Assembly: GCA_904063045.1 (NCBI GenBank)
Contig: CAJFCJ010000058.1
Location: forward strand, 15,973 to 79,972
From: Dimorphilus gyrociliatus
Lineage: Eukaryota; Animalia; Annelida
Direction of reading: 5' to 3'
Length of the DNA: 64,000 nucleotides
Made by a program: the position numbers and the translations under genes. Below the pieces are notes generated by a model that was not told where the DNA came from, made no database searches, and saw only the letters and a program-made list of their open reading frames with translations. This document shows, piece by piece, positions 7,744-56,984 of this stretch. Positions within the stretch are counted from its first letter, which is position 1; the number at the start of each line of letters is the position of its first letter.

Positions 7744-9354
7744 TCACAAAACATCGAACATTTCGTATATAACCGATACGGAATTCGAAAGTCCGCTGCA
7801 AATGTGCAAATCATTTTCAATTTTATCATTAAATGACAAATCAATTGTTTCTAGTTTGTCAAATTTCATCAAAATAGTTTTAATTTTTTTCCAATTTTTT
7901 TCAGTTAAATTACAATTCGAAATTAAAATTTTCTTTAAAGTTTTAGATGATTTTTCCAAAGATTTAATTACAGCTGACAAACCTTTTCCCATCCCAGTAT
8001 TATATGAAAGGTCAATTATTTCAAGATTAGAACATGACCCCAAAAAAGTCTCCAAAGAGGGGCAGGCAGTTTTAGCTATATTACAATTGGATAGATTAAT
8101 TTCCTTCAAAGTTGTCGCTGAGCTGGAAAAACCATTCAAAAAACTAAATAATCCGTTTGCAATATTTTTATTTTTCTTTAAATTTATTACTTCAAGATTA
8201 CCGAATTTTATGGTTTGAATTTCAAAAAATTCCCAATTTTTCCATTTCAAACCACAGTTAGAAAAATTCAAATCCCTTAGCGTATCTGATGCTTTTTCCA
8301 GTCCATTGCAGATTCTTTGAATTCCATTACCTAGTCTATTATTATTAGATATGTCAAATAATTCAATATGGCAACATTTGTGTAATAATTTTTCAATAGG
8401 TTTACAGAGTTTCTCCGTTAAATCACAATTTGAAAAATTAACTTCTTTCAGCGGGTATGATGATTGTTCAAGTTGTTGACAAACAATTGACCAATCACCT
8501 TTCTTCAAAATATTATATGATAAATCAATTTTCTCCATATTTGTTCTCTTTCGTAGAAATGTAATAATATAGCTTGGATCACCTGTATCTTTAGTGTTAT
8601 TTGTGAAAGGTTTCAAAGTCAACGATTGTTCATTGTTAGTATGGTTTGCATAATCTATTTCTTGTAGTTGATAGTCAACTTTGGGATTTTGAAGTATGGT
8701 TAGCTGTAGTTTGTTTTTCGAAAAATTTTCTAAATATTCCAATAAATTCTGCTGTTTGGTGTTATCTTTTAAAAGATTCATTAAAGAATCCTTTCTCTGC
8801 TTGCTTAAATTTTCAGAAACTTGTCTAATCATTTGGAAATCATTTTGAATTTTCAACAAATAACCTTTTTCAGTTCCTTCAATTTCACTTAAAAGTTCTT
8901 TTTGATTATTCTCTTCAATTTTTAAATAAGAAATTATCAATTCCTTGTTTTTCAATTGTTTTTTCATAGTTGAAATTTGACATTGCGAATGATCTTCGTC
9001 AAAGCATATATTGCATAGATTTTCAATATTGTGACTTGCACAAAACAATGTAGAAAGTTGTTTATGTTTTTCACAAAATTTTCCATCCAAAGGTAATCTA
9101 TTAAGAGATTTGGAGAGATAATTTTTAGGTAATTTTACTACACTCTCCTTGGATACTGCATGAAATACTTTGCAATTAGGACATGTTAATCCTATTCTAG
9201 AAATTAATTTTATATTATAGTTTAGTTTCAGCAAACACTGCAGGCAGAATGTATGTTGACAAGGAAGTACTCTATGGTCTTTATCTACCCAAGAATCCGA
9301 GCACAAGGAACATTTAAGACTTTGTTCGTCAATAAAATATCCACCAGTAGCCAT
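7744..9354 (-). CDS. TRIM-like protein: RING + B-box + coiled coil + ribonuclease-inhibitor-type LRRs
   Basis: C3HC4 RING (CSLC...CQHTFCLQC...CPNC), B-box-like CEKH-x7-CASH...CNIC...HSQC, K/E/Q-rich coiled coil, then about four 57-aa LRR units. Likely start is MATGG at 9354, just after an AG acceptor. Confidence 0.85.
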   Translation of the reverse strand: MATGGYFIDEQSLKCSLCSDSWVDKDHRVLPCQHTFCLQCLLKLNYNIKLISRIGLTCPNCKVFHAVSKESVVKLPKNYLSKSLNRLPLDGKFCEKHKQLSTLFCASHNIENLCNICFDEDHSQCQISTMKKQLKNKELIISYLKIEENNQKELLSEIEGTEKGYLLKIQNDFQMIRQVSENLSKQRKDSLMNLLKDNTKQQNLLEYLENFSKNKLQLTILQNPKVDYQLQEIDYANHTNNEQSLTLKPFTNNTKDTGDPSYIITFLRKRTNMEKIDLSYNILKKGDWSIVCQQLEQSSYPLKEVNFSNCDLTEKLCKPIEKLLHKCCHIELFDISNNNRLGNGIQRICNGLEKASDTLRDLNFSNCGLKWKNWEFFEIQTIKFGNLEVINLKKNKNIANGLFSFLNGFSSSATTLKEINLSNCNIAKTACPSLETFLGSCSNLEIIDLSYNTGMGKGLSAVIKSLEKSSKTLKKILISNCNLTEKNWKKIKTILMKFDKLETIDLSFNDKIENDLHICSGLSNSVSVIYEMFDVL

Positions 9355-9868
9355 TTTGTCTTTAGTGAAGCTGATATAATAAAATATCAATATTAATAAA
9401 TATTTGATAAAATGTTGTAGGCAAGATGATAAGTATTGAATATTTACTACCGCCTCCTAGTATTGAAAACCTTTCATCCAACTAAAATAAAACTAAAGAT
9501 AACACAATAGAAAGATCAGTAAGGAATTGAGTCAGATATTCAAAAGAGATTCTGTTCAATTTCGATTATCTTTGTATTTGCAAACAGATGTCTAGTTTCT
9601 TTTTACAGTTTGTTTGACGCCTATCTCAAATGAATGTAAAAATATTGACACATTTTTTTAAAATCATTTTAAAAATTTACGCCTTTTTAATTGTTTCGCT
9701 GAAAACCATATTTTTGGAGTATGTAAAGTATAGATTTTTTACAATGTCAATTATACAGGCCAAGTAATTGAAAATTTGAAAGAAATTTCCACCATAAACA
9801 TCCTTTGAGAAGCAAGTATTGTCAAGGCAAAGAAAATGGTATTTGTCCTGATTGTTATAGAAATTAAC

Positions 9869-10825
9869 GAATACGACAGAAGTCGCCCAGGGCAGAAGTC
9901 GCCCAGGACAGAAGTCGCCCAGACATTGATAGAAGTCGCCCAGAGCTGTGACAGAAGTCGCCCAGAAGTGTGATAGAAGTCACCCAGGACTATGACAGAA
10001 GTCGCCCAGAAGTGTACTAGAAGTTTACAGTATGCTTAATAAAATGCAAAATATATGAAAATAATTTATGAAGTAGTTTGTATTTATTATTTGTAATCTC
10101 TGAGTGATAATGAAAGAAATTGTTTTACCAGTTTTTTTTGTAGAGTAATGTTTTACCACTTGATTTGTTGTGAAAATTGAATTGTTAGCTATTCGAATTA
10201 AGTGATTTTCTGCATTGTAATCCTTCAAAAGTAACAATTGTTTTGATAAAAATATTAGTCTCTTTAAAATCATGTATATATCTTACAATTTTTTTTTAAT
10301 TCTCATGATCTTTGACATAACAGGTATTTGAAAGAAATTTATCAACATGGCAAAATTCTGCTTTGAATGTAGAAACAAATTTAATAAATTAAATGAAATG
10401 CATAAGATTTTTAGTTTAAAACTCAATACTGTACTTTGTATTGTGATTGTGGGAATTTTCTGCTGTACTGATCCAAATAGAACCTCAAGTTTGTGCACAA
10501 GTTTAAGCAAATAAATGATATTTATGTGAAACCTTCAACAGAATGCCAGTATTTTATTATTTAATTCATTCACTATTTAGTTATTATTAAATGATGCATT
10601 CTATATTTATTAATACTTATTATATATTTCAATTGTCAGAAATCAATAGAAACAAAGAACAAACACATTATGTCTTCTACAGTTCTAGGCGACTTCTGTC
10701 ATAGTCCTGGGCGACTTCTATCACAGTTCTGGGCGACTTCTGTCACAGCTCTGGGCGACTTCTATCAATTTCTGGGCGACTTCTGTCCTGGGCGACTTCT
10801 GCCCTGGGCGACTTCTGTTGTTCCC
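9869..10825. mobile_element. Non-autonomous foldback-type Mutator (Phantom-like) element
   Basis: Left arm has about 7 tandem AGAAGTCGCCCAG units and the right arm is the mirror-image array. Flanked by a 9-bp TSD with one mismatch: GAAATTAAC (9860-9868) / GAAATGAAC (10826-10834). Confidence 0.85.
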
Positions 10826-11567
10826 GAAATGAACACATATTTTGGGTTTTTGTTAGTAATTTCTTTTTTAAATTAAACAAAATACACACTTAAGTTCCTT
10901 TCATCTGCACATCGGATTATACCAGTTTTCATCACAAATGAAAGTGTTGAAGGACTGTTACTGCAAAAAAATGAAAATAGAATTTAGATAATGAGAAAAA
11001 ACTCATTTCTTATGGATGTATTAACTATTTAAGATAAAATTTACTAATTGGAACAACATGACAGTTATTTATATTTTCACTTCCGTTGCAAACAATCTCT
11101 TCTCCTTTTATTAAACGTACATTATTATCCTTGAATAATTGAAATTCGGCTCTCAGCGAATAATCCAAATGACCACCCAAATGCCAAAATATTTACAAAG
11201 TAAAACTGGAATGCCATGTTCCATGCCAGCTAGAGCTATATTTCTCAATCCCTTCTCCATGAATACTTGAGGATATCCTGAAATTTCCATTTTTGACAAA
11301 CTATCCTTTCTATCATAGTAATTTTCGGTTTCTGTGAATAGTCTAAACTGGTTATCTAGTTTCTCTTTAAAATTTAACTTTTTTTTGCAACCTATATATA
11401 AAAACCGGAAGTCTTTTTTTATCAGTTTACATCCTAGTATGCTAGTACCCGACCCCTTGCATGAGGTTAAAGTAAAACCCTAGATAAAAAATATGCAATG
11501 TATAGTTGGTTAGTCTTTCAAATAGAACACTTATATTCATACATAAAATAGTTGATTGCAGATTATC

Positions 11568-11810
11568 GGTTATTGATTTACTATCCCAAAGCAAGAAAAT
11601 AAAAAAAATTTCTATAATTGATATTGATCATTTTGCCAGATATTTCCACATGAAACGTGGAAAAATACGTCTAAAAACTGTAGAATAATAAGAACTATTT
11701 GAAATAATTTGTGTTATAAATAGATTCGGAGTGTTTGTTTCTATCAACTGTATAAAAAACTTAAAAATCCCCTATTATCGTTCAAATCCATCCAACTCTT
11801 ACAAGTCTTA
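11568..11810. repeat. Local direct repeat, copy 1 (copy 2 at 16157-16622)
   Basis: Shared blocks TATTGATTTACTATCC, CTAAAAACTG, TAGATTC-GAGTGTT-GTTTCTATCAA and CAAATCCATCCAACTCTTACA. Confidence 0.75.
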
Positions 11811-25554: not shown

Positions 25555-27249
25555 CCTAAAATTTTCTCATAGGATTTAAATTTCCACGAGACGGATATAT
25601 AAAAGCAGTAATTTTTGATACTGTGGGTAAAAATTATCCTTTACATATTGGAATCTGGGAGAGATTATGCACAGATCCATTAACCTTCGTATGTAAGAAT
25701 AAAATTGTAATTCCCGGATCAACAACTCCTGGAATTGGAGTATTTAATGTAACTGAAAAAAGTTTTGTTAAAACAAATTATTCAATTGAGTTTGATTTTT
25801 TCAATAGTCATCAGCGTAATATTAAAATAAGTGAGAATAAAAACGATCTTTTGGCAACTGTCTTTTATGAAGTAAATTTAAAATATCATTTCTATTATAA
25901 TCTAAAAGATTCTGAATTTGTCTATTCTAACTAGAAATTTCAGAGGCTTGCAATAAAATCATTAGTACATTTGGTTCACCAGTCATAGATAAGATGTATC
26001 GTGGAGCAAATTTTTTAAATATAGTTACTCATCCTAGCTTCGTTAGCAATGGGTTTATACTTGGCTTTAAAATGTTTAAATTATTCAGTGGAATATGTTT
26101 CGTAGGAATTTGGAGATCACTTCCAGATCAGATTTATCCCTTCAAATTAAAATTGATCCATATAATGCCTATAGAAAATTGACCAGCATCAACTGAACAA
26201 GCTATAACTCTTTTGCAGCCTATAGCTATAAAAAATGGTGATATTTTAACAATACTATTCATAAGAAAGATGATAAACATATAATAGCAAATGATGTTAA
26301 AGAAACCCACTATCCATAAGAGAATCATGATTATATTTCATATAATTTTAGTTTTATTAAATATATAAATTTTCAACTCTAATATCGACAGTTATGTGGA
26401 AGTGATGTCTTTTTTGAAGATTTTCACATTGGTTACATGTTCAATTGCGAAAACGCTCTTCACTCTTTCTTTAAACTGAGCCCACCTAGTTACATAGAAA
26501 ATATTTTAATAATTGTCCTAATCCAATTATCCAACTGTATTAAATAGTTAAAGTTTTTTTCCTTAACCTGTGCATATATGAACCAAAGAATAATCAACAC
26601 ATATAAAAAGAGTATATATTGCTTTTCAATTCTTGAGTTCGGAATGTGTTGGCTAATTTTTGTGATTGTAACAAGTACTTATGCTCCCATTGGAAATAGG
26701 CCTACCATATTAAAATATCAATAATTCAGAGATTTGAGATGAAAAATGTATTTTTTCTCTCTATAATGATAAGAAGAATATTATTAAATATACTAATATC
26801 CTTCATTTTCATTCTTTGAGTACGGAAAGAGAAAAAATCAAGAAAATATTATTTTTTTAAGGTGTAACAGTGACTTACCGCCGGTACTGTATTAGAACAT
26901 TTTTGTAGATTTTCAATCTCTATGCTTTGTTTTTCATTTAAATTATATGAATGCAAAAATATCTGCCTTAAAGTAGTTGAAGATTTTTGGAGCTCTTCAC
27001 AAATACTGAAAATTTCATTTTGCATCTGTCTATTCTCAGATAATTGAATTGTTTTTATATTAGAACATCTATTAAGGAAATATAACTATTTACTTAATAG
27101 AAATCTCTTTAAAGTTTTGCAGTACTAATTCCTATGAGAGGAATATTATATATAAAAAATATCAATATGATTTGATAAGAATCTCTAACAATAGAATTTC
27201 AGTCATGCAAAAAGAGAAATCTTTATTTTCATTAAAAGAATTAATATTT

Positions 27250-28236
27250 TCAATATTTTATGCCAATTTGTAAGAGAATTTCTTCCATTATTTCGGCAAT
27301 AGCAATCGAGTCATCCAATGAGACAAGATCGTGCTCGGTCTTGCCTTGGAGAAGTGCTTCCCGAACAGCTTGAGCTTGATAGCAAAATCCTTCACTGTTG
27401 GGGAAAATCATTGGCTTATTAACTTTTGGAAGATTAAAACTCTTCTTTCCACTTGGAGTTTCAATATTAGTAGGAGCATGGAAGTGGTCAACTTCAATTG
27501 AGCCTTCAGTGCCATAAATTCTTGCTACATTTTTCATTGGTGTCTTAAAAGTGCTTAGAAGGTTTGCAGCTCCACCATTTTTAAAGAGTAAGGTGAAACT
27601 GGTAAGAGAATCTACTCCATTCTCAAGTAGATGACCACAAGATGTAATTTTAATGGGTTTTTCACCAAAAACTAGAAGAGCCAATTGTACCAAGTAACAG
27701 CCCAAATCCAATACTGAACTTGCGCCCAAACTACGTTCTCTTAAACGAGGTGCAATTCGATCCGCAATTCCAAATGTGCCTGTTAGAACAACCGGTCTTC
27801 CAATACTTCCGGTTTTTAATTCATTTCTTAATTCATTGTAGACTGGAAAAAATCTACTCCAGTAACCTTCCATTAAGAAAACTTTATTCTTTCTAGCAGC
27901 TTCAACCAATTCTTTGGTTTGTTTCGTATTTACGCAAAGAGGTTTTTCGCATAGAACATTTTTTCCTTTATTAAGTAAATTCAAAGCTATTGGATGATGA
28001 GCTGTATTAATTGATCCAATGTAAAATATATCAATGTCATTATCATCAGCTAGCTCAGCATAGCTTCCATATGCTTTTGGTATATTAAACCTCTTTGCAA
28101 ATGCATTTGCATCATCCAACTTTCTAGCAGCCACTGCTTTAACAATATGTTCATTTTCTGGTAAATATTTTAGACACGACGTGAAATCCGAAGAAATGTT
28201 ACCAGTGCTAATAATTCCCCATTTTGTAGCCGCCAT
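27250..28236 (-). CDS. DHDH: Gfo/Idh/MocA-family trans-1,2-dihydrobenzene-1,2-diol dehydrogenase (D-xylose dehydrogenase), intronless ORF, 328 aa
   Basis: WGIISTGNIS Rossmann motif, AVAAR, AYGSYAEL, VLCEKP, FLMEGYWSRFFP, LDLGCY. Confidence 0.92.
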   Translation of the reverse strand: MAATKWGIISTGNISSDFTSCLKYLPENEHIVKAVAARKLDDANAFAKRFNIPKAYGSYAELADDNDIDIFYIGSINTAHHPIALNLLNKGKNVLCEKPLCVNTKQTKELVEAARKNKVFLMEGYWSRFFPVYNELRNELKTGSIGRPVVLTGTFGIADRIAPRLRERSLGASSVLDLGCYLVQLALLVFGEKPIKITSCGHLLENGVDSLTSFTLLFKNGGAANLLSTFKTPMKNVARIYGTEGSIEVDHFHAPTNIETPSGKKSFNLPKVNKPMIFPNSEGFCYQAQAVREALLQGKTEHDLVSLDDSIAIAEIMEEILLQIGIKY

Positions 28237-37577: not shown

Positions 37578-38828
37578 TTAATTTAGAGAGATTCCTTTTA
37601 ATGTTCTAAAATTTGGACAGCTTTTTATCAAGTTTATTATCGTAATCACCTGTTTATCATCTAAAGGACATTCTTTGATATTTATTTCCTTTAAAGTATT
37701 TGACAACTTAAAAAGTCCATGCAAAATAATATCCCAACCAGGATTTATTATTGTAGTTTTTTCTAGGTTGATTTCTTCAATACTTGGACAAACTGTCATC
37801 AAATTGCCTATTTCACTACATTGTTGATAATCAAAAGAGCAAAACCTAAAACTAATATGCTTTAAAGTATTGACTGATTTTATCAGACTATTACAAATTG
37901 CTGCCAATCCAAGGGTAGTAAATTTATTCCATCCAAGTTTTATTGTTTCAATTTTGTAACATTTACTCAACAAATATCCAATCCTTAAAAAATTCTCTTC
38001 CTCTAAACAGCAACCCTCAAAATTGATATATTTTAAACAACCTGCTGAATGAAGAAGCATTGAACAAATATTTGAAAAATGAACTGTCATTGAATGATTG
38101 AAACTTAAATCAATTTTCTCTATTTTAGAGCAGTATCTCAAAAGACTTTTTAGATGTACACATTTTTCTTCATTTAAATTACAAAATTTAAATTTTAGGA
38201 CTTTTAAACTACTGGCTGATAAATAGAGTTTTGAGCAAATAAATTGCATTTCATCTGCTTCAATACTAGTGAATGAGAGATTGAATTTGACCAAGTTTGA
38301 ACATTTATCTAATAAATTTCCAATATCTTTCCAATATCTTTTATTATTTTCATGAAAGTGACATTTTCCAAAATTAATATCCATTAAACTGTTGGATGAT
38401 TTCAATAGTCCTTTACAAATTTCAGATAATCCTTGTTGTATATACAAATTGAATTTTAAACTGACTTTTTCTATTCGTGAGCATTCATTTAAAAGATGTC
38501 CAAGAGATTTACAGTCATGTTCACAAATACTACACGATTCAAGGTTAATGTGCTTTAAAATATTTGAAAATCTATATAGATAAGGAAAAATAGATGATGT
38601 TATATTTTCAATCTTTCCAGATCCATTTAGATTAATACTTTCAATACTCCTACAACAGTTCAATAGCTCACAAATCAATGAAATTTGTTCTTTATTTAAA
38701 CTACAATCAATAAATTGAATTTGTTTCAAATGCTGTGATGATTGAGATAGTCCTTGACATATTTCTGTGATACAACAATTAGATGATTTTCTTCCAGATA
38801 GCTTACTACTTTTAATGAAAGAAATCAT
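37578..38828 (-). CDS. LRR-only protein (ribonuclease-inhibitor-type, about seven 57-58-aa units), 416 aa
   Basis: Repeated ICxGLxxSxxxLKxINFxxCxLxExxCxxLxxLLxxCxxIExIxLxxN pattern, the same style as the TRIM-LRR gene. Confidence 0.85.
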   Translation of the reverse strand: MISFIKSSKLSGRKSSNCCITEICQGLSQSSQHLKQIQFIDCSLNKEQISLICELLNCCRSIESINLNGSGKIENITSSIFPYLYRFSNILKHINLESCSICEHDCKSLGHLLNECSRIEKVSLKFNLYIQQGLSEICKGLLKSSNSLMDINFGKCHFHENNKRYWKDIGNLLDKCSNLVKFNLSFTSIEADEMQFICSKLYLSASSLKVLKFKFCNLNEEKCVHLKSLLRYCSKIEKIDLSFNHSMTVHFSNICSMLLHSAGCLKYINFEGCCLEEENFLRIGYLLSKCYKIETIKLGWNKFTTLGLAAICNSLIKSVNTLKHISFRFCSFDYQQCSEIGNLMTVCPSIEEINLEKTTIINPGWDIILHGLFKLSNTLKEINIKECPLDDKQVITIINLIKSCPNFRTLKGISLN

Positions 38829-40752: not shown

Positions 40753-41400
40753 CAGTCCCAGACAAAAATATCCATGTATGAAAGAAAAACAAATGTTTTC
40801 GATAAAACAAATCCAACAGTTACTTATTAATCCTGTAGTCTTTGTTAATAAACTGCTAAACTCTTCCTACATACAAATGTTTTACATAATCTTTATTGTT
40901 AATATTAATTTTTTCTACTTCCTCCCATATTTTATCCCATAGATGATTAAGTGTTTGGGAATGATGAATTTCATACACTTTTTGTTTCAAATAACCCAAT
41001 AAATTTTCTACAGGGTTGTGGTCTGATGAGTAAGAAAGCCAACCGATCAAGGACAATTCCATTCGCCTCCAGAGTAACTGATGTTACTGGTGTTACACTG
41101 GCAGTGTGTGGTAGTGCATTATCCCGCTGCCAGATGAAGTCTTCACCAAATTATGCCTCAACATCTGAAAAATTGTTCTCTGAACATATTCAGAGTAATA
41201 TTCTCCAGATAAGTGTCCGAATACTATCATCCCTCCACCAAAAGGAAAGCTTATACCTAGAGAGTCTTGCTCTATCATCTAACTGCCATGTTAGCAGATC
41301 ACCCAGACTATCAAGAAAAAATTACTATAATAATAACTTGGTGCTGAATCCATCCACCTAGCACAGCTATTCTGGTACATCTTGAACATCTGTACCTGGA
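40753..41400 (-). mobile_element. Tc1/mariner transposase remnant
   Basis: FGGGMIVFG, GEDFIWQRDNALPHTA and DHNPVENLLGYLKQKV in shifted frames; TA-CAGTCCCAGACAAAA terminus at 40751-40767. Confidence 0.7.
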
Positions 41401-41422
41401 TGGAAATAAATTTGGTATAATT

Positions 41423-41710
41423 ATGTCGAAAGACATATTTGCTTATATAAAAATCCATTGCCCAAAATTAAAAGTACTCTCTTTTTATGACTGCCCATTG
41501 GATGAGCATTATGGCTTCAATGTTGTCGATGCAATTGGCAGTAATGTTAGCCTGAAAAATTTGAGTTCTTCGATAAAACCATTATGTATGAATAAATTTT
41601 CTGTTGAAACAGCTTCTGACTTACCTTTAAAGCTTCTTATTTTTGCTCCAAATGCCAGAAATTCGTTGTGCACAATCCCGGACGATCAGACCCTTGTTGT
41701 TGATACCTAA
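41423..41710 (+). pseudogene. Isolated fragment of the NLR-type LRR unit
   Basis: IFAYIKIHCPKLKVLSFYDCPLDEHYGFNVVDAIGSNVSLKNL matches the IF..IKENC.NI..LNF.NCGF...IG..IGDAIG repeat of the NLR. Confidence 0.45.

Positions 41711-42659: not shown

Positions 42660-42696
<37 letters not shown>
42654..42696. repeat. (CT)n microsatellite
   Basis: Near-perfect CT run. Confidence 0.95.
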
Positions 42697-42700
<4 letters not shown>

Positions 42701-42999: not shown

Positions 43000-44054
43000 A
43001 TGAACAATCAAACAACTATCAATCATACTTTTCATCATCCAATTTCTAATCCTCTACGGTCATTTATAGTTGGAATTCCATTATTTTTCACTTTTATTTC
43101 AACAATTTCAGCTCTAACATTTCTTCCTACTGTTAAAGGTATCCCTAAAGTATCAAAAATGCTGATAATAAATATATCAATAGCTGATTCTTTAACAAAT
43201 GTTTCATCTCTACTGACATCATTTATCACTTCTATAAATGAAAAATTTATCTTCGGATTTGTATATTGCCAAATTATTGGTGTAATCGTATCTACAAGTG
43301 CTTTAAGTTCACTATGGACAATAGCATTGATATCAATTGATCGCTACCTTGCTGTAAATATACCTGGCAGGTGAGTACTTGTATTAATAAAAACAAAAAA
43401 AAGGAAAATTTGTTCTTGTTTTATAGATATAAAAGTATTATAACTTTGAAAAGAATGAAAATTGCAGTTGGTTTTTGTTGGCTAATATTTTGCTGTCAAA
43501 GTTGTTTACCTTTTATAAAAATTGTTAACTTTTACTTTTACAGTTTTCTTGAAAATGAATTAATATGTTCACCACCAATTAAACCAACTATACAGACATT
43601 AATCTATATGATTATTGGGCCGATCTTATCAGCTGGAATTATTTTATTATCATCATTCAAAATTATTTTATGCCTAAGAAAACAAAATTTAAAGATAAAT
43701 TATTCAAATTCAAATTCAAATCAACAGAAAAATATTTCAAAAAGAAATATTAGAGTAATTAAACTTTTAATATTAACATTTACAACTTTTTATGTACTTT
43801 GGATGCCATTTAATGTTTGTGTTATTGGAGCAATTTTTAGTACAGAATTTAGAAAACACACTCAAATATTCAGTTTTATATTTTTGTGGATAGCATCTTT
43901 CAATGGTATGGCCAATACTTTAATATATACATATATATTTCCTGGGTTGAGGGCTAAATTTTTAAACATAATAAACACTATAACATTTAAAAAAGTTATT
44001 AATAGTTTTATAGAAGATGGAAATGAAACATCTACAGTTCATACTATACAATAA
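43000..44054 (+). CDS. Class A GPCR, two exons (43000-43370, 43427-44054)
   Basis: LIINISIADSL (TM2), FVYCQ, SIDRYLAV, YVLWMPF (TM6), NTLIY (TM7). A 56-nt GTGAGT...TATAG intron joins in phase. Confidence 0.87.
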
Positions 44055-45697: not shown

Positions 45698-48600
45698 ATG
45701 ATAAATTCTTTATTGAAATATTATGAAAAGAAGATAAAAGATGTTTTAGAAAATGATCAACTATTTAATAAGATATTACAAGAAAGCTTTAACTCAAATT
45801 TTTCTAATTATCATTTTGATGATACTCTACAATTTTTGAACATTTTAGAAAATTTAAAATGTCATGATAAAAAATATTCTGAACTTGGAAACTTGATTAA
45901 AAATACATGGTCGAATATTATTGATGAAAGAAAAATTTATGCTCAAATACATTGGGAAACTTGCCAAAAGTGTCCTCTTAGTTATAATAAAAGTTTTAAT
46001 ATCAGATTTAACGATACAACAACACCAGTTCAACTTTTATCTACAAAATGTGATAACAGTCAAAAAAATGTTGGTATTTATTTTCACATTGAGCAATTCT
46101 TAAGGTTTATAAGGTCCAATTGCCAAAAAATATTGATTTATGGTGATGAAGGTGTTGGTAAAACGTTCTACTCAATGCAGCTCCTCTCCTTATGGTGTCA
46201 TAGTAAAGAAATATTTTTACAAGATTATTTGATTCTATATATAAACCTTGATGAAATTGAAGACACGAACTCTTGTTCATTTCAAGAAATATTATTCAAG
46301 AAAAACTTTGGTAAACATTCAAAAATCTCTTTTGAATTATTTAAATATTTTTTATCTGATGAATGTAAAGAAAAAGAATCATTTGGAAAAATTCTATTAA
46401 TTCTTGATGGAGCTGATCAATTAAAGTGTAAAACATCATCTGAATTTTATAAAATGATATTTTTGGCTAAAACAAAACAACATTTTCCCATAATTGTTTC
46501 ATCAAGACTTTGGAAAGTTAAACATGTCCTGGATACTTACAATAGCACATTTGAATTAAAAGGATTTAATGAAGGACAAATCTTTTTGTTTTTCAAAAAA
46601 TGTCTTCTAGAATCTAATGTTTTCATTCAAAATACTGAAGATATTAACCTAAATTATTTATCACATGAAACTATAAAGCAAAAGGAAAAGGAAGAGTTCA
46701 ATCAACTATCAATTCTCTTAAATAATAGAAATAATCTCTTGTATTGTTGTAAAAATCCTTTAATTGCATATTTGGTATTTGTAATTTGGAAAGAACAGAA
46801 ATATTTTAATATGATTTTCAGTAAATTTGAAATATTTCAAATTATTACAACCCTATTTTTAAAAACTAAAAGGATAAGTAAGGGAAAGTTTTGTCATTAT
46901 TTCAACTATTTAACCCAATTAGCTTTCAATGATGTTTTTCAAATTAAATCAACAATGTGGATAAACTCTAAAGTGGATACTTTAAAAATCTATCAAAAAT
47001 TTCATTGGTTTCTTCTTCCTCCTTCCAATAATAAATCAGCTATGAACATTGAATTTTCTCATAGACAATTTAAGGAATATTTTGCAGCAAAGTTTATTGT
47101 TGATGCTTATCTTTACAATAATCATTCTATAAATTATAAAAAAATTCAACTCATTGAATCAACGATTGGCAATACGGAAAATTTGTTAATTTTTACAAAT
47201 GTTTTCTCATTTGTCCTTGGCATTGATTGTGATGTTTTTACAAAATTATTAGCCATTAGACACGATATTTTATCTACTGTTGACATAAATAAAAAGCTTT
47301 ATAACTATATAATGGATAACTCTACTACTGCAATTGAATTATCTGAAATGAGACTACCAATAGAAATTTGGAAGTTAATTCTATATTACTCGAAAAAAGA
47401 TATCAAAAAGATTAAGTTAACAGATGTAAAAGTCGATGTTTCAAGTTTTCTTGAAATTGCTGGACAATTTCTAACAAATTCTCTGTCAATACTGGAAATA
47501 TATGATTTTGATATTCATTCTTCATCAATAGAACAACTCTTTGAAACGATTATGGAAAAATTTACAAATTTACAAATTTTAAAGATAAAAAATAACAATT
47601 TTCAAAATTCAAAAAAACACATTCAATTGAATATTAAATCAAATAGTTTACAAGAGTTCTATCTAAAAAATTGCAATTTACAATTGACTAAACTGGCAAT
47701 TAATTGTTCAAATCTAAGAATATGTAAACTGGTAAAAGTTTGCACATTTTTGAATTCTTCTAATTTTAACTTTGTACAATTTATTGGAAATCATTTTTTA
47801 AAATTACAAGAATTAAATATTTCTGGAATTTCTTTAAAAAAAGATATTGGAAATTTTTTTTTTAAAATATTGAATACATTTTCAATATCATTAACATCAT
47901 TAAAATGTAATAATTGTGATATTATTGCACAGTCTCATCATGTAGCAATGTTTATGAGTAAATATGACAAGTTAATTACATTTGAAATGAAGGGAAATGA
48001 ATTAATTGGAATAAATCTAGATGACTTTTTCAAAAGTGTTATGTCTGCTAAGAATCTAAAACAATTAAAATTACCACTGTTCAACTACTCGAATCAAAAT
48101 GCTATAAATGTTTGTAAATCAAATAATACTAATAATGATCTCGAGAAGGTAAAGATTGATTTGATATTACTGGATATTGGTGGAAATTCTCTGGATAATA
48201 TCTTAACATATATTTTCATTAAAAAAGTAATTACAGCTTCGATTAGTTTAAATGAAATTATTCTGGATAATATAAATTCAAAATTCAATCAAATGCCATT
48301 TTTGATCACACTATTCAATGAAATCAATTTCTCAAAACACTCTAATCTGAATTTTCTATGCAAAACTTCTCTTGAATCTACTCATTCAATGTTTTTAAAT
48401 AGTTTTTCTAAAAAATTCTTAAAGAAAGAATTTAAATTTCACTGTTCAAATTATAATTTGAAAACAAAAGCCTTCAATGATATATTTTTCCAAAAAAAAG
48501 GAGGATTTCTATATGAAACTCAAGAGAGACTTTTAAAACATCTGAACAATCATAGTTATTCTAACCTATTTACAAATGTTTACCTTAAAAACTGTCAATT

Positions 48601-51589
48601 GATGGATGATTTTCTAATATTATTTACAAAATTTTGGTCAGATTTCACATCATTAAAAAAACTTGATATTAGTTTTAATGAATTTTCTATGGAAACAAGT
48701 ATACATTTTTTAAATAGGATAAAGAATGAACAAATTCAACACTTAAGCCATTTATATATGCATCACTGTAACTGGAAAAATAGTGATATATTTGAAATTT
48801 TAAATATAATTTTACAAATGGACTTTTTAAAAGTTTTCAATTCAAAATCAAAATGTCAAAATATGATAGAGAAAAATGAAAATGAAAATTTTGTAATTGA
48901 TATCAATCTACAATCATTTAATTTAACAAAGACGAAAGAATTAAATAGAATTTTAAAATATATTTGTGATGAAATGACTTTGGATATAGGAATTTTAACA
49001 AAATATGAAATGGATATTGTTCTATATTTATTGAATTTGAAAAATATTTCACTAAGTAGACTCATTTTTCAAAAGTATAATTATTTGTCAGAGTACAATT
49101 GCTTGAAATTGTTGATAAATCAATTAACTTATAATCAGGACAACATTCAACAATTGGACTTTAATAACAGTTTAGTTGGAGATGATAATGGAAAAATTTT
49201 ATTGCAATGTATTAAGGAAAATTGTAATAATATAGTCTTGTTAAACTTTACTAATTGTGGATTTTCATCTCAAATTGGCAATGTTATTGGTGAAGCTATC
49301 GGTAAACAACATCAGTTACAACAGCTATTTTTAAGGGATAATTGTTTGGAAAATGATGTAGGAATGTGTATATTTAAATATATTAAGGAAAACTGTCAAA
49401 ATATAATTATTCTAAATTTAGGAAATTGTGGATTTACATCCAAAATTGGCAATATTATTGGCGATGCCATTGGACAGCAGAGAAAACTAAGGGAATTATA
49501 TCTTTTTGATAATTTATTAGAGAATGATGTTGGAAAAAATATATTTGCCAATATTAAAGAAAATTGTACAAATATTTCCTATCTGAATTTTGAAGCTTGT
49601 GGATTTTCATATGAAATTGGAGATGTAATTGGAAATGCAATTGGCCAACAAAAGAAATTAACTACAATTTATGGATCAGATAATCAATTTGGAAATGATG
49701 CTGGGAAAAATATTTTCTTTAATATTCAACAAAACTGTAATGAACTTGTCCATCTTAAATTTTATAATTGTGAATTTACTTCAGATATTGGAAATTGTAT
49801 TGGAGATGCAGTTGGTCAACTAAAAAATCTTCGAACATTTTATCTTAATGAAAATGAGATTGGAAATGACGTTGGAAAAAATATATTTTTGAATATGAAA
49901 AATCATTGTTGTAATATTGTTTATCTTAGTTTATCAATTTGTGGATTTACGGATCAAATTGGCAACATTTTAAATGAAGCAATTGCCCAACAAGCTAATC
50001 TTCAAGAATTGTATATCTATGAAAATCAAATTGGTGATATTTTGATGCAGAACTTATTCAAGAATGTAAAAGAACATTGTAAAAATTTATTGGTGCTCAA
50101 TGCAGGAGATTGTGGATTTTCTTCGAAAATTGCAAAAAGTTTTGTAAATTTGAATTTTGATGAGAATTTTTTGGAAGAATTATGTATTTATACAGACACA
50201 CATAATTTTTATACTACAAAAGAGACATTTGAAAATGTCGATAAATACTTGAAGAGTTTTATTAGCATTTGTCTTGGAAATTGTGGATTTACTTCGGATC
50301 AAGCAAATATCATTGGTGATATAATTGTTCAACAAGACAAACTCAAAGAGATTTATCTATGGGATAATAAATTTGGTGATGAAGGCTGGAAATATATTTT
50401 ATTACTTTTGAAAAAAAATTGCCCAAATATATCATTTTTGGATTTAAGTAATTGTGGAANNNNNNNNNNACTTAAAAAATTATTTCTAAAAGGGAATTTA
50501 TTAGGAGATGATGTTGGGAAAAATATCTTTGATAGCATAATACAAAATTGCCAACATATTGAAATGATTAACATCTTAAATTGTGGGTTTAGAAAATATG
50601 TTGGACAATCAATTTGTAGCGCAATAGGCCAACTAAATAATCTTACACTTTTATGTATAAGAGATAATCTATTACAAGATTCCATTGGGAAAAATTTATT
50701 CCTAAACCTTAAGGAGACTTGCAAAAATATTTCAATATTCAATTTTAGTAATTGTGGATTCACTTCTGCACTGGGAAATTCTGTTGGAGATGCTATTGGT
50801 GAACAACACAATATGAATGAATTATATTTTTGGGATAATCAATTGGGTAATGATGTTGGAAAAAATATCTTTCAGAAAGTCAATCAAAATTGTTCCAAGA
50901 TTACAATTTTAAAATTTGAAAATTGCGGATTCACTTCTGATATTGGAGATATTTTAGGTGAAGCTATTGGTCAACAATGTAAACTTTCAGTTCTGGCCCT
51001 GAGTGATAATTTGATTGGTGACACTGTTGGGGCAAATGTCTTTCATAAAATTAAAGGAAATTGCCGAAATATTTGTATGCTTAGCTTCGAAAATTGCGGA
51101 TTTACATCCAATATTGGAAATATTTTAGGTGAAGCGATTGGTTTGCAGAGTAACCTTAGACAATTAATTTTTTCACATAATCAATTAGATGATAATGTTG
51201 GAGTATCTATATTTCAAAATGTCTATGAAAACTGTCAAAATATTTCAATTCTTCGCTTCCACAACTGCGGATTTACTGCTAATATTGGAAATATTATTGG
51301 TTATGCAATAGGTCAACAAAGGTCAATTAAAGAGTTGAACATCAGAAGTAATCTACTTGGGAATATTGTTGGAGCATCTATTTTCAAAATTATTAAGAAG
51401 AATTGTTCTGAAATTCAAAAAATGTTTTGTAGAAATTGCGGATTTACTTCAAAAATTGGAAATATTATTTATGATGCAATTTCTCAACAACAAAGGTTAC
51501 AAGTGTTCTCTATTTGGCAATACACATATAAGGGTAACATTAGAAGTAACATGGAAGAACATATTTGGGTTAGGAATAGACTTGGTTAG
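45698..51589 (+). CDS. NACHT-LRR (NLR-like) protein, single long ORF spanning an assembly gap
   Basis: Walker A GDEGVGKT, Walker B LLILDGADQL, IIVSSR, CKNPL, and winged-helix EFSHRQFKEYFAA; then degenerate LRRs and 14 visible 57-aa units. Confidence 0.9.
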   Translation: MINSLLKYYEKKIKDVLENDQLFNKILQESFNSNFSNYHFDDTLQFLNILENLKCHDKKYSELGNLIKNTWSNIIDERKIYAQIHWETCQKCPLSYNKSFNIRFNDTTTPVQLLSTKCDNSQKNVGIYFHIEQFLRFIRSNCQKILIYGDEGVGKTFYSMQLLSLWCHSKEIFLQDYLILYINLDEIEDTNSCSFQEILFKKNFGKHSKISFELFKYFLSDECKEKESFGKILLILDGADQLKCKTSSEFYKMIFLAKTKQHFPIIVSSRLWKVKHVLDTYNSTFELKGFNEGQIFLFFKKCLLESNVFIQNTEDINLNYLSHETIKQKEKEEFNQLSILLNNRNNLLYCCKNPLIAYLVFVIWKEQKYFNMIFSKFEIFQIITTLFLKTKRISKGKFCHYFNYLTQLAFNDVFQIKSTMWINSKVDTLKIYQKFHWFLLPPSNNKSAMNIEFSHRQFKEYFAAKFIVDAYLYNNHSINYKKIQLIESTIGNTENLLIFTNVFSFVLGIDCDVFTKLLAIRHDILSTVDINKKLYNYIMDNSTTAIELSEMRLPIEIWKLILYYSKKDIKKIKLTDVKVDVSSFLEIAGQFLTNSLSILEIYDFDIHSSSIEQLFETIMEKFTNLQILKIKNNNFQNSKKHIQLNIKSNSLQEFYLKNCNLQLTKLAINCSNLRICKLVKVCTFLNSSNFNFVQFIGNHFLKLQELNISGISLKKDIGNFFFKILNTFSISLTSLKCNNCDIIAQSHHVAMFMSKYDKLITFEMKGNELIGINLDDFFKSVMSAKNLKQLKLPLFNYSNQNAINVCKSNNTNNDLEKVKIDLILLDIGGNSLDNILTYIFIKKVITASISLNEIILDNINSKFNQMPFLITLFNEINFSKHSNLNFLCKTSLESTHSMFLNSFSKKFLKKEFKFHCSNYNLKTKAFNDIFFQKKGGFLYETQERLLKHLNNHSYSNLFTNVYLKNCQLMDDFLILFTKFWSDFTSLKKLDISFNEFSMETSIHFLNRIKNEQIQHLSHLYMHHCNWKNSDIFEILNIILQMDFLKVFNSKSKCQNMIEKNENENFVIDINLQSFNLTKTKELNRILKYICDEMTLDIGILTKYEMDIVLYLLNLKNISLSRLIFQKYNYLSEYNCLKLLINQLTYNQDNIQQLDFNNSLVGDDNGKILLQCIKENCNNIVLLNFTNCGFSSQIGNVIGEAIGKQHQLQQLFLRDNCLENDVGMCIFKYIKENCQNIIILNLGNCGFTSKIGNIIGDAIGQQRKLRELYLFDNLLENDVGKNIFANIKENCTNISYLNFEACGFSYEIGDVIGNAIGQQKKLTTIYGSDNQFGNDAGKNIFFNIQQNCNELVHLKFYNCEFTSDIGNCIGDAVGQLKNLRTFYLNENEIGNDVGKNIFLNMKNHCCNIVYLSLSICGFTDQIGNILNEAIAQQANLQELYIYENQIGDILMQNLFKNVKEHCKNLLVLNAGDCGFSSKIAKSFVNLNFDENFLEELCIYTDTHNFYTTKETFENVDKYLKSFISICLGNCGFTSDQANIIGDIIVQQDKLKEIYLWDNKFGDEGWKYILLLLKKNCPNISFLDLSNCGXXXXLKKLFLKGNLLGDDVGKNIFDSIIQNCQHIEMINILNCGFRKYVGQSICSAIGQLNNLTLLCIRDNLLQDSIGKNLFLNLKETCKNISIFNFSNCGFTSALGNSVGDAIGEQHNMNELYFWDNQLGNDVGKNIFQKVNQNCSKITILKFENCGFTSDIGDILGEAIGQQCKLSVLALSDNLIGDTVGANVFHKIKGNCRNICMLSFENCGFTSNIGNILGEAIGLQSNLRQLIFSHNQLDDNVGVSIFQNVYENCQNISILRFHNCGFTANIGNIIGYAIGQQRSIKELNIRSNLLGNIVGASIFKIIKKNCSEIQKMFCRNCGFTSKIGNIIYDAISQQQRLQVFSIWQYTYKGNIRSNMEEHIWVRNRLG
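50460..50469. other. Assembly gap (10 N) inside the NLR repeat array
   Basis: Run of N. Confidence 0.99.
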
Positions 51590-52199: not shown

Positions 52200-52890
52200 A
52201 TATTTTAGGATGCTTTATCAAGAAAAAATAATTGTTATAATTAAATCTTATCTGTTCTGATCAAGTAGAAAATGGAACCCTGCATTACAAGATATTTGCA
52301 AAGGGCTATACAACTCCTCGCAAACATTGAAAAGTATCAGCTTTATTGGATTGGAATTGGATGAAGAACATTGTAAATGTATTGGTGCACTGTTGAATAA
52401 TGATTAAACATTATTTGCAAAATACACTACAGATTGTCAACTTTAATAATTGTAAAGTAAATTTTCATCTATATTCTACCTTTTTTGAAATATTGAAAAG
52501 TTCTGCTTTAATAGAGATGATGAAACTATCAAGAAGCATTTGGAGCTTATTAAAAAATTGCGACTAAATGCAAATCAGCTCGAAGCATTAATTCCTTTGT
52601 TGAAACGACCTGAAGGGATAGAAAAACTTGATCTAAGTGAAAATTACTATCCTTTTTACATGAATCACACCATTTTGAAGATTAGATCATATAATGAATG
52701 GAAAGAAGTCAAGCTTAGTGGTTGTGATATTTTTGAAACTGAAACTACAAAAATAGATGATCACTCACAACATTTCAATGCCAACTTAACTAAAATAACT
52801 TTTTGTGACTACAATTATCATTCACCACTTTACTTTGCTGAAATTTCCTACTCATTGAAGCATATAAACTTAAGTTGCTGCAACTGTTAA
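52200..52890 (+). pseudogene. Decayed LRR gene
   Basis: LQDICKGLYNSSQTLKSISF...EEHCKCIGALL and IEKLDLSEN, interrupted by stops and frameshifts. Confidence 0.6.
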
Positions 52891-53479: not shown

Positions 53480-55307
53480 AAGCATTATAACAATAGTGAT
53501 TGACAACAGTCTAACAACATTAAAGATATTTTAGACTGGGGAATAAATGTCAGAAGCCTTATTGCATAAATCCAGGGAGGTGATTGAGGCAATTTCAAAT
53601 TTCTCCCATAAGCTGAATATTTTGCTTTGAATTTTCTAACATGCTTTTCTTTGCTGTCTACAAATTTTCTTTTCACTAAGCAATTTTTTATATAGTTTTA
53701 TCAGATCAGCTTCTCTCTTCAGTTCATCTAAAAGAGAATAGAATGCAGTGTTAGAGCAAATATTCTTGTTAAGCCTGTGATGACAGCCTTCAAGATCATT
53801 ATTTGTCCTTATAGCCTCACCATATACAGACCATACCTCTGGTTTATAAAATCCATTTATCCTTTGTGTCTCAACATACTGCAATAGAGACTTCATTTCA
53901 ATGGAACTTATTAATTGCCATTAATTTCTTCATCATTCTATATTCAGCTTTTTTCTCCTTGTAAATCTTAGAAAATCCTAATTCCTGGAAATAAATATGT
54001 CAGTTCTATCTGAAGCTCAAATGCTAAATTAAAGTATTACTTGAATCTTTCTGTGTTTTGCCTGTGTCCAGTGAAAAACATACCCTCTAATGTTTGCTTC
54101 AGGATAAATGAATGATAGTGCTTACCAAATAGCTTTTTCAAAGTCTACAACAATTTTTTTGGGGCTCTGACCATTTGTTAAATCTTGTATTGCCTGTTAA
54201 TTCAACAAATTAGATTACTCAAGTTAAAATGAAAAATTATTGTACCTTAAATAATTTCTTGTAGGCTGTCTGTCTCTTGGATTCCATAAAAACAAAAGCC
54301 ACTGGAATTTGTTTTATAAAAAAAAAAGGAGAAATAAAACAAATTGTGAAAATATTAGTTTTCTATCACTCTCCATTTGTATATCCAATTGTAAAAAATC
54401 ATCAGGAATAAAAGCTTTAGCCAAATTAAAGTGAATGCTATGAGGTTCAGCTCATCTAAACTTTTTTTTGTCCAATTTGCCAGTCTTGTACAATTATCTA
54501 GAGAGGGAATAACTTCACTAGAACTGCAATATTTCACCAGAACATCTTCAGCTAAATGTTTTCCTGAACTACTGATATCTTTATTACAAGCATTTTTCAG
54601 TTCATTCCTAATCATTATTTCTTTTCAAGATCAGGTACTCTTTCATGAGAATGGGATAACTTTCCAGGATAAAAACTGTTCCCATGCTGACTAACTGTTG
54701 CTGAACATTTGTTTCTTTTGTTCCTAACACTGCATATCCAGAATGTTGTCTTGTTTCTTTTTTCTTTAATATTGTAGCAGAAATTGTTGAAAAGTAGCAA
54801 ATCTTTTCCTTTCTGGCTCATTCCCTTTAAGATTTTGAATGAATAACTTTCTTTCTCACAATCTGATTTTGGAGAAGCTATAAATGATACTTCCATCATA
54901 TTATTTTGTTGAGCTGGAAGATCTTCAACTAAAACATTGTTTAATTCCATAATGCTGCCATTAGTATCATTTCCACTAGAATTTCCACAATGACTTTCAC
55001 AAACAATAGTCTGCTCAATTCTATTATTTACTGTATGGAAATTTGGTGTTTGAGTTAATTCTTCATTAACAGATGTATCAGAAGGTAGCCTTTGCAGTGT
55101 AACAATGCATTTCTTCATTGATATGTTACAACAAATGTTACAATAAAATGATTGATCTGTGAAAAAACATAAAAACATATTTGTAAGGAAGGATAGTAAC
55201 AAAAACTCAAACAAAACCTTTATATTTCAAACATTTCTTGTGTATTTTAAATATCATGAACTTGTTCCATATATTCTCTCTTCACAAATGTAAAAAATTG
55301 GTGCCAT
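53480..55307 (-). mobile_element. Decayed Mutator/Phantom transposase (finger remnant + FLYWCH + MULE DDE)
   Basis: SQKGKDLLLFNNFCY...FWIC...C...HSH (FLYWCH); KIVVDFEKAIW*...FHW; WSVYGEAIRTNNDLEGCHHRLN. In-frame stops and deletions; no TIRs found. Confidence 0.85.
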
Positions 55308-55719
55308 ATTCTATTTAGAATCTCTGTTAATAACCAACAGTTAAAATTTAATATTTAGTCAATTAATAAATGTAAACAAAATGGCTGCAATAAAAATAGA
55401 GTTTAATTCATGAATAGATACTTTCAAGCCAATATTCTATAACTTACTGAAAATAGCTTTAAAGTATTTTGTTTTGTTGGATGGATCTCTCCTGAGGAAA
55501 TATATTTAAACTACCAACTTCTATATAATATAGTAATTCCAGATATGTAAAATAATTATTATAAAATTCAAAATATTTTCAGAATAATGGATACCAGTTT
55601 TCCTTATTTCTGAAGTATATTTTACATTGTTTTACAATTTCCTTTTCCTGTTTTGAGAAAAAGTAGAAAGCATATTTCTTTTCTTCATTTATCATAGAAG
55701 CTTCAATAGAAATTACAAC

Positions 55720-55990
55720 ATGAATTTGAAAATTGTTGGAAGTGTGGATTAAAGAAAATTCAGATGCAAGTTGTGCAGACATTTTTATCATACAAAGTGT
55801 TCAAAATGTAAGTAAACTCTCTAACTTTCTCAGGTATAATGCTATATCACCTATATATTAAGATGCAGATTATTGTCCTGATTGTCATGATGTCAGCAAA
55901 CAAGAAGACTTGCCAGAACTAGAATCATTAAGAAGAAAAGCTTCTAGATATAAAGAGAGTAAAAGACCAAAGCATCCAAGACAATTCAGT
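55720..55990 (+). mobile_element. Internally deleted remnant of the same transposase family
   Basis: MNLK/CWKC...KFRCKLCRHFYHTKCSK, intron, DADYCPDC, then directly LPELESLRRKASRYKESKRPKHP. Confidence 0.7.
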
Positions 55991-56349
55991 ATTTTAATCA
56001 CTTTTAATTTATCATTTTTCATTTGAATTTGGATGAATTATTGGATAGACTTGTTGATTTAAATATTTGTTAAAATTTGTTATTTCTTGTTCTGCATTTT
56101 AGTTATCAAACTTAACACTCCTTACTATTTGTAAATTGTTTTTTATATTAAAAAAATAAACATAATTGTTCTCAAAATAAAAATTATATTTGTCATATTT
56201 ATCAATTAATAAGTACTAAACCTGTCTTCAAGTGAGACACAATGCCTTTAGTATGACTGCCTTAGAGTGGGCCAAAATGTCCTGACCCCAAATTTTTCCA
56301 TACCCCAGCTCCCTAATCATCTTCCCAACAGCCTCTTGACCAACATCTA

Positions 56350-56984
56350 ATTTTTAGAGTTGACTTTTACAGCATCTTGCATTCTTGAAAAATTTGATCT
56401 TGGAGGTAATCCATTCTTATTGGATGGCTTGGACAGAAAGACATTAATGTATACTAATTTTGGAAATACGCTAAAGGTTATGAAACTTCCTTTTTATAAT
56501 TTAGATGAAATAAAAGTACATTTTTTAAAATGTTTCTTGAAAACTGTTTATCAATTGAAGAAATTTATCTAGCAGAAAATTTTAACATGAACAATTATCA
56601 GATAATTGACTGTCTTACAAAATTTCATTCCACTCTAAAAGTTCTAAACTTGAAAGACTGTAACTTGAATTAAGTAAACTGTAGATATCTTATAAATTTG
56701 CTCAGTCAATGTTCAAATATAGAAAAAAAAAATATAGATGATAATTCACAAATGGGAAATGGTTTAAATGAGATAATTACAGAACTCAAAAGTCATACAA
56801 TACACTGAAAATTATAAATTTGAAAAACATTGTAATTTCACTTTTGAAATGTTCAAAAATCTAGAATATTTGCTGAGTAGCTGTGAAAAACTTGAAGAAA
56901 TTAATTTGGGAAAAAATCCAAAAGTATGTGATGATTTGAAAAATATATCTTGTGAACTAGAAAAATTGAGGTATTCTTTAAAGC
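56350..56984 (+). pseudogene. Decayed LRR gene interrupted by the Phantom insertion
   Basis: LEKFDLGGN and LEYLLSSCEKLEEINLGKN...LRYSLK run up to the TSD; stops upstream. Confidence 0.65.

Follow-up and report, generated by a model that had tools for sequence, protein, structure and literature searches.

Does a single leucine-rich repeat (LRR) module serve several interchangeable heads in the annelid Dimorphilus gyrociliatus, or do distinct receptor families share no more than a class of repeat? The question is raised by a 64,000-nucleotide stretch of its genome, hereafter the window (C58:15973-79972 of a 77.9-Mb assembly with 349 contigs and about 29% guanine-cytosine (GC) content), in which three open reading frames (ORFs) carry LRRs with a period of 57 amino acids (aa). 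In window coordinates, one lies behind a TRIM head (7744-9354, minus strand), one has no head (37578-38828, minus strand) and one follows a NACHT domain (45698-51589, plus strand). The three ORFs are present as described in an initial annotation, which proposed that a sensor cassette is shuffled among effector heads. Pfam confirms a RING finger and LRRs in the first, LRRs alone in the second and a NACHT domain in the third, and for all three the nearest named proteins are from D. gyrociliatus. We consider it likely that these genes represent two large, lineage-specific families of single-exon, immune-type genes whose repeats form two old lineages, mostly bound to their heads and rarely exchanged. 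The evidence goes only part of the way towards a freely interchangeable cassette.

The two-part period itself stands. A lag of 57 aa gives the strongest self-similarity in each of the three ORFs; a lag of 114 comes second, and further peaks include 28 and 29. The repeats alternate between 28 and 29 residues around an LxxLxLxxN/C core. Among PDB structures, the profile of the TRIM-family units finds ribonuclease inhibitor first (E = 1e-59; NLRP5, E = 1e-39), as does the array of the NACHT gene (E = 4.5e-17; then NLRP14, 1e-10, and NLRP3). The unit of 57 aa thus corresponds to the 28+29 double repeat that is classical for LRRs of the ribonuclease-inhibitor/NLR class. Because the period is generic to this class, an equal period alone is no sign of a shared cassette. 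The units fall into two types, which we call A1 (NACHT-linked) and A2 (TRIM-linked and LRR-only). Within genes, window units are 41% identical in the NACHT gene, 30% in the TRIM gene and 33% in the LRR-only ORF. Between genes, identity is 27.5% for TRIM versus LRR-only units and 14% for NACHT units versus either of the others. The A1 and A2 profiles can be aligned to each other in register over all 57 positions (14% identity, 90% probability), and they do not cross-hit.

The same division runs through the genome, from which 60 loci were sampled, the NACHT loci being taken through the closest heads and the best A1 matches. A first scan gave 540 A1 and 2690 A2 unit candidates, the former mostly in open frames of 1000-2600 codons and the latter mostly in frames of 300-900 codons, together with 145 matches to the TRIM head, 83 to the NACHT head of the window and 98 NACHT domains over the Pfam cut-off. 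All 32 LRR-bearing ORFs with a TRIM head in the sampled loci hold A2 units only. Arrays linked to the NACHT clade of the window (about 17 loci) are A1 throughout, save for a few weak A2-like matches in an irregular middle region. In an unrooted tree of 518 units from the window and the 60 loci (56 columns), one split parts 220 TRIM-linked from 199 NACHT-linked units with a support of 87, or 95 after units from eight database proteins are added. Wherever a gene has a recognised head, its units lie on the side of that head (419 of 419), and the window arrays follow suit, the NACHT array being A1 and the TRIM and LRR-only arrays A2. Averaged over units, identity is 0.365 within the TRIM-linked set and 0.41 within the NACHT-linked set, against 0.16 between types, where the maximum is 0.36.

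These results contradict the statement that the same unit stands behind NACHT and TRIM: overall the two are 14-16% identical and form separate clades. The idea of a shared cassette holds for the TRIM and LRR-only arrays, which belong to one clade, and fails for NACHT versus TRIM apart from two genes described below. The split is also old, since public-assembly proteins of both layouts, TRIM-LRR proteins P0005-P0007 and NACHT-LRR protein P0012, fall on the matching sides of it (eight of nine units for P0012). P0005 and P0007 have no close match in the D. gyrociliatus genome, and P0005-P0007 are probably from another species. Clustering of repeats by head type with deep divergence, which the initial annotation had named as the pattern that would speak against shuffling, is therefore nearly complete, but the absence of expansion and selection that was to accompany it is not what we observe (see below).

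Exchange between heads is nonetheless real but rare, with two cross-type genes among the approximately 50-60 gene loci or proteins examined. The first, L012 (C182, junction at about 12.5 kb), is a 1121-codon open frame that encodes a RING (25.7 bits, slightly below the Pfam cut-off; E = 4e-14 with a hidden Markov model (HMM) of the TRIM head), four A2 units, a hybrid junction unit and then at least 11 A1 units. The first half of the junction unit is A2-like and the second half A1-like, and the switch is in register. Its A1 units have a mean identity of 0.39-0.46 (maximum 0.68) to NACHT-linked units, are as close to them as those are among themselves, and are nested among them in the tree. The second, P0014, is a 1049-aa NACHT protein from the D. 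gyrociliatus annotation whose six units are all on the TRIM side (A2), nested rather than basal in the unit tree. Were the two families fully independent, both genes would have to be artefacts of assembly or annotation in repeat-rich small contigs; L012 does lie on a 28-kb contig, many members sit on small contigs or beside gaps or contig ends, and the array of the window NACHT gene is itself gapped. A random mis-join, however, would seldom switch in register within one unit and leave the frame open as in L012, and P0014 lies on C5, a 4.5-Mb scaffold, with NACHT and A2 units in one uninterrupted 1062-codon frame. We therefore find complete independence unlikely. The opposite extreme, a single 57-aa sensor cassette often shuffled among NACHT, TRIM and no head, with window arrays of recent common origin, would account for the equal period and register and for L012 and P0014. 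It is somewhat harder still to accept given the low identity of the window NACHT units to the TRIM and LRR-only units, type profiles that do not recognise each other and an old split that proteins probably of another species respect. Shuffling of a sensor among heads is borne out by two genes, against 419 of 419 head-linked units that sort by head type.

Other loci of mixed or unclear layout were noted in the course of this survey. The frame at C38:147879-154220 encodes a NACHT gene of 3238 codons, the LRR part of which is the best match in the genome (32% identity) to the LRRs of the TRIM-LRR protein P0005; it may be another NACHT gene with A2-like units. L020 (C45:9000-17499) has a NACHT ORF and an overlapping, frame-shifted ORF of the middle region. 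Downstream of both, on that strand, lies an ORF of 967 codons that combines 11 A2 units with a weak TRIM-like head; the arrangement represents either two adjacent genes or a broken fusion. L018 (C69:57473-61900 and beyond) is a 3245-codon open frame with A2 units near its start, and its first 1476 aa have no Pfam match.

In the TRIM gene of the window, a RING (aa ~15-61) is followed by a B-box-like zinc site (aa ~94-125) and a long helix (aa 130-213), after which a linker leads to an LRR tail (aa 252-536) of five A2-type double units. Its RING exceeds the Pfam cut-off for zf-C3HC4 (22.5 versus 21 bits), and the C3HC4 ligands are invariant or nearly so in 32 TRIM-LRR paralogues. The single sequence is below the Pfam threshold for a B-box, but the columns C94, H97, C105, H108, C114, C117, H122 and C125 are invariant or at least 90% conserved in the same 32 paralogues. 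Positions 8-191 of the TRIM-family profile align with the RING-B-box chain 8amr of TRIM3, and its matches among solved structures are N-terminal or RING structures of TRIM2, TRIM3, TRIM21 and TRIM56. In an AlphaFold model with a predicted local distance difference test (pLDDT) score of 79.5, a helix of about 85 residues precedes nine beta-alpha LRR turns that form a solenoid; the helices predicted after the B-box are continuous (aa 130-196 and 198-213, pLDDT ~75-89). Together, the conserved ligands, the profile matches and the predicted coiled coil indicate a genuine RING/B-box/coiled-coil head. The C-terminus, by comparison, holds none of the known TRIM domains (PRY-SPRY, NHL, COS-FN3, PHD-bromo and others). 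Because it is an LRR solenoid, the protein has a TRIM-type head with an atypical tail and lies outside every described TRIM class.

The reported lack of introns in intact copies is also upheld. Each intact window copy is one open frame, and for five paralogues the public gene model is an unbroken stretch of one ORF, which speaks for genes without introns. The public gene model of the window TRIM-LRR gene (P0002, 407 aa) comprises only the last 407 aa: it starts at an internal methionine and lacks the RING and most of the B-box, although the frame is open from the RING onward. TRIM heads are also found apart from LRRs. A tandem cluster at C5:2.52-2.60 Mb contains about 25 TRIM-head genes of ~500-550 aa that have a RING and no LRR, and the C-terminal half of four sampled cluster genes (L045-L048) has no Pfam match.

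The NACHT gene of the window is a true NLR. It begins with a helical bundle (aa 1-88), followed by the NACHT domain (aa ~145-302; 36.9 bits versus a Pfam cut-off of 26.7). After an LRR-like middle of irregular pattern (aa ~560-1130) comes an array of 14 A1-type units that an assembly gap interrupts. Its translation shows Walker A (GxxGxGKT) and Walker B-type (hhhhDGxDQ) motifs, and a P-loop was detected in 12 NACHT paralogues. Neither the N-terminus nor the middle region has a Pfam match. The model of aa 1-88 is a bundle of five helices plus a short N-terminal one (pLDDT > 90), for which Foldseek returned nothing significant. Of the 50 chains that VIA-align lists, roughly half are from CARD, DED, PYD or death domains, and these make up most of the first twelve, but Z scores are only 3.6-5.5, short of what the tool considers reliable. 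This comparison of models is suggestive, and not proof, of a death-fold type of N-terminus.

The gap lies inside an A1 unit, and what it hides can be partly constrained. Together with one flanking base on either side, the ten Ns add up to four codons, and the frame as written is therefore unbroken. The left flank ends at unit position 3 and the right flank resumes at position 22; with positions 4-21 absent, the gap must conceal 18 codons or more (52 nt in addition to the two bases present, or 52 + 171n), a length that leaves the same remainder modulo 3 as ten Ns and is frame-compatible. Units 1-7 pair one to one with units 2-8 of the closest paralogue, L003 (49-72% identity), and less cleanly with units 3-9 of L001 and L002. 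The last two units match the last two units of L001-L003, and the units right after the gap have no positional partner. Since the closest paralogues have 24-25 units versus 14 here, about 10 units may be hidden at the gap or truly lost. Continuity of the array across the gap cannot be established from the sequence.

All units of the LRR-only ORF are on the TRIM side of the tree, their nearest relatives (44-55% identity) being dispersed over various TRIM-LRR genes. The closest named proteins are RING-LRR proteins with 34-38% identity. We considered whether the ORF is a recent truncation of a TRIM-LRR gene and rejected this possibility because overall identity to its nearest relatives is just 34-38%. 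In DNA of 29% GC, an open frame of 441 codons whose nearest relative is at 38% suggests on grounds of base composition that the ORF is maintained. How such forms can arise is illustrated by L019:6528-9239, a head-less 904-codon frame that is 95% identical to the LRR part of an inverted neighbouring TRIM-LRR gene of 1256 aa and is a partial duplicate of it. A head-less copy of TRIM-LRR origin exists, in line with the proposal of the initial annotation. Another head-less A2-type LRR protein, P0010 of a public assembly, has 468 aa, and its N-terminal ~100 aa have no Pfam match.

Copy-number expansion and birth-and-death evolution are clear, as had been proposed. Unit matches number in the hundreds, many sampled loci are truncated or split into several frames, and array lengths vary: TRIM-LRR paralogues that are 90-94% identical are nevertheless 623, 1032 and 1256 aa long, which implies gain and loss of units. 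We also analyzed substitutions at concave-face positions fixed beforehand from the LxxLxLxxN/C motif (unit positions 53, 55, 57, 1, 24, 26, 28 and 29). In the young TRIM-LRR clade formed by L019, L040 and L042, the ratio of nonsynonymous to synonymous rates (dN/dS) is 7-11 at these positions versus 0.4-0.9 elsewhere. Pooling three pairs, all of which share L019, gives 56 replacements and 0 synonymous changes at concave positions against 91 and 27 elsewhere (Fisher's test, 2e-5). For the pair L019-L042, dN at concave positions over dS at all codons is 5.3 (bootstrap interval 3.2-9.0). The most variable unit positions in this pair are 29, 3, 26, 28, 6, 45, 37 and 53, and among 20000 sets of eight positions drawn at random, just 4 reach the variability of the concave set. 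These sequence comparisons, with a summary dN/dS of about 5-9 at the concave positions, give a strong signal of diversifying selection at predicted concave-face positions in the clade. NACHT pairs yielded no concave excess, being too diverged or having mis-registered repeats.

That the genes are not immune receptors at all, but for example substrate adaptors for protein turnover or fast-evolving germline or self-recognition genes whose expansion is drift in poorly constrained, repeat-rich DNA, is the least credible of the alternatives: heads and scaffold positions, too, have a high dN/dS (0.4-0.9) and there are many pseudogenes and fragments, but the concentration of replacements at predicted ligand-facing positions, with no synonymous change there, fits selection on binding and not drift, the combination of NACHT, LRRs and a death-fold-like domain is the layout of NLRs, and the few expanded families of the D. 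gyrociliatus genome paper are mostly implicated in immunity (PMC7854359). The main text of that paper makes no mention of NACHT, NLR or leucine-rich repeats (PMC7854359).

According to the interpretation that we favor, two old repeat lineages mostly bound to their heads, the first family would be an NLR in which a helical N-terminus, probably of the death fold, precedes a NACHT ATPase, and a long, homogeneous A1 array follows an irregular LRR region. The second would be a TRIM-type E3 ligase with RING, B-box and coiled-coil helix in which an A2 array has replaced the usual C-terminal sensor, and head-less A2 arrays such as 37578-38828 would be its offshoots. Both families would grow and decay through gene duplication, gain and loss of repeat units, and truncation, and arrays would occasionally recombine in register, by which a RING can acquire an A1 array or a NACHT domain A2 units. 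The concave LRR face presumably binds ligand. In the NLR, binding might release NACHT oligomerisation and lead to signalling through the N-terminal bundle; in TRIM-LRR proteins, by analogy with the SPRY domain of TRIM5alpha and TRIM21, the LRRs could bring the RING ligase to the bound target. LRR-only proteins may be competitors, partners or functionless.

Several observations weigh against this interpretation. The tree on which the split is based has just 56 columns and no root. About 60 more distant NACHT loci, and most head-less arrays, lie outside the sample. One of the three distant annotated NACHT proteins obtained carries A2 units, so exchange may be commoner than the sample suggests; the other two, P0011 and P0013, have weak A1-side units. 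Mis-assembly could account for the L012 chimera, which lies on a small contig. A single young clade, on contigs outside the window, provides the selection signal, and the dN/dS check on concave positions that had been suggested, while strongly positive there, is negative for the genes of the window itself: in comparisons of the window TRIM-LRR with its nearest paralogues (58-60% identical), dN/dS is 0.6-0.8 in every class of positions with no concave excess. The death-fold assignment is weak, with Z at most 5.5 and an empty Foldseek search, and an immune role rests on analogy together with the selection signal.

The remaining features of the window are given in Table 1, with their coordinates and those of the genes. 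The decayed LRR pieces reported near 41423, 52200 and 56350 are real, each coinciding with HMM matches. Fragment 26960-27082, which lies just downstream of an oxidoreductase gene (27250-28236), adds to them. Searched with HMMs of TRIM heads (42 sequences) and NACHT heads (11 sequences), the window showed no further head remnant at E < 0.05, including upstream of the LRR-only ORF. Elsewhere in the genome, an exactly equal A2-unit score (77.5 bits) recurs at ten places on C98, C112, C198, C229 and C268, each with one in-frame TAA, which looks like an LRR pseudogene amplified within a larger repeat or mobile element.

Table 1. Genes, decayed repeats and element remnants in the window (window coordinates).
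Feature	Position	Strand	Evidence
TRIM-LRR gene, 536 aa (ORF 7744-9354)	7747..9354	-	Pfam RING, paralogue conservation, profile matches, AlphaFold model
Further decayed A2-type (TRIM-type) fragment, absent from the initial annotation	26960..27082	-	HMM E = 5e-13, 46 bits
LRR-only ORF, 416 aa, six to seven A2-type units, mid-unit start, without recognisable head	37578..38828	-	Period, unit tree, Pfam LRR
Decayed A1-type (NACHT-type) LRR fragment, ~1.3 units	41378..41485	+	HMM E = 2e-6
NLR gene, at least 1963 aa	45698..51589	+	Pfam NACHT E = 4e-9; units; PDB profile matches
Assembly gap inside A1 unit	50460..50469		Frame kept; repeat register; paralogue match breaks here
Decayed A2-type LRR fragment, stop codon at end	52273..52344	+	HMM E = 5.5e-7
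FLYWCH zinc-finger ORF and small neighbouring ORFs	53636..55214	-	Pfam FLYWCH E = 2e-10
Decayed A2-type array, ~4 units over several frames (pseudogene)	56381..56983	+	Four HMM matches, E 0.02 to 4e-10
FLYWCH ORF, then weak MULE transposase match; decayed element	57701..58572	+	FLYWCH E = 2e-10; MULE E = 0.0025, below Pfam cut-off

The copies had also been said to sit among MULE, Tc1 and BEL remnants, and this is correct in part. FLYWCH ORFs and a weak MULE match are present. Pfam found no MULE match on the FLYWCH copy at 53636-55214, which is probably a decayed MULE-type transposase, and neither Tc1 nor BEL was seen in the window ORFs of at least 95 aa to which the scan was limited. Between the LRR genes lie ordinary genes, namely an innexin, a GFO/IDH/MocA oxidoreductase and two rhodopsin-type G protein-coupled receptors (GPCRs). 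Two FLYWCH-bearing remnants in opposite orientation (53636-55214, minus strand; 57701-59360, plus strand), probably of MULE-type transposases, flank the decayed array at 56381-56983. Directly after this array, at ~57000-57100 on the plus strand, a short tandem DNA repeat translates into a repeating RTPQ/RTPH-like peptide. One of the rhodopsin-type GPCRs (43000-44054, plus strand) extends over two overlapping frames, 43000-43374 and 43371-44054; the split could be due to a frameshift, a short intron or a sequencing error.

Expansions of NLRs in invertebrates, single-exon NACHT-LRR genes and shuffling of N-terminal domains are established (PMC3879445). Like animal NLRs, including the expansions in Capitella teleta, Amphimedon and sea urchin, the window gene combines a NACHT domain that bears Walker A and B motifs with LRRs of the ribonuclease-inhibitor type at the C-terminus and a small helical domain at the N-terminus; a single exon for NACHT and LRRs in some invertebrate clades, large lineage-specific expansion and N-terminal shuffling are likewise common ground (PMC3879445). 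It differs by a very long homogeneous array (14 to ~25 double units) after a second, irregular LRR region, and by an N-terminal domain that lacks a Pfam family match. For a genome of 78 Mb that is otherwise noted for gene loss, about 100 NACHT loci is also a high count.

TRIM E3 ligases with a C-terminal sensor include TRIM5alpha, TRIM21 and the fish finTRIMs, and the B30.2 domain of finTRIMs resembles that of fish NLR proteins. The TRIM-LRR family has in common with them the RING/B-box/coiled-coil head, a variable, positively selected and presumably ligand-binding C-terminus, organization as a locally duplicated multigene family and a type of sensor that occurs in both TRIM and NLR families. 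Here, however, the sensor is a ribonuclease-inhibitor-type LRR solenoid and not PRY-SPRY, and what is shared with NLRs is the class of repeat, direct exchange being rare. Ribonuclease inhibitor (RNH1) and other LRR proteins of its class display the same 28/29 alternation and 57-residue period, and the LRR-only ORF is equally head-less; the families described here are instead large, fast-evolving and tied to signalling heads, with no evidence of RNase binding. In F-box/LRR (FBXL) proteins and other LRR substrate receptors, an LRR solenoid likewise presents a bound target to an E3 ligase, but here RING and LRRs are in one chain with a TRIM-type head, no F-box and another LRR subclass. Literature searches for TRIM-LRR, RING-LRR and RBCC-LRR returned no paper, and a broader search returned only reviews without such a layout. 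Unlabelled clusters in the ESM Atlas that combine a B-box with LRR_4/LRR_8-type repeats score below 0.9 and serve as leads only.

NLRs and TRIMs rank among the main intracellular families of animal innate immunity. It is conceivable, and we advance it with considerable reserve, that D. gyrociliatus keeps a diversified repertoire of cytosolic LRR receptors in which a TRIM head wired to a hypervariable NLR-class LRR would be a sensor-effector class undescribed in animals, new specificities being generated by gain and loss of units, point changes on the concave face and occasional in-register recombination between TRIM and NACHT arrays. The comparison carries a caution: the common 57-aa period is a property of the repeat class and not evidence for a shared module. 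The two families offer a case in which cassettes pass between receptor families at a low but measurable rate, one chimera being in register, and head-less derivatives caught shortly after birth. They also offer a natural fusion of an E3 ligase with an LRR sensor that bears a clear footprint of diversifying selection on its predicted binding face. The genome that holds them has been studied for compaction and gene loss, yet it contains about 100 NACHT loci and dozens of TRIM genes with an NLR-class LRR sensor.

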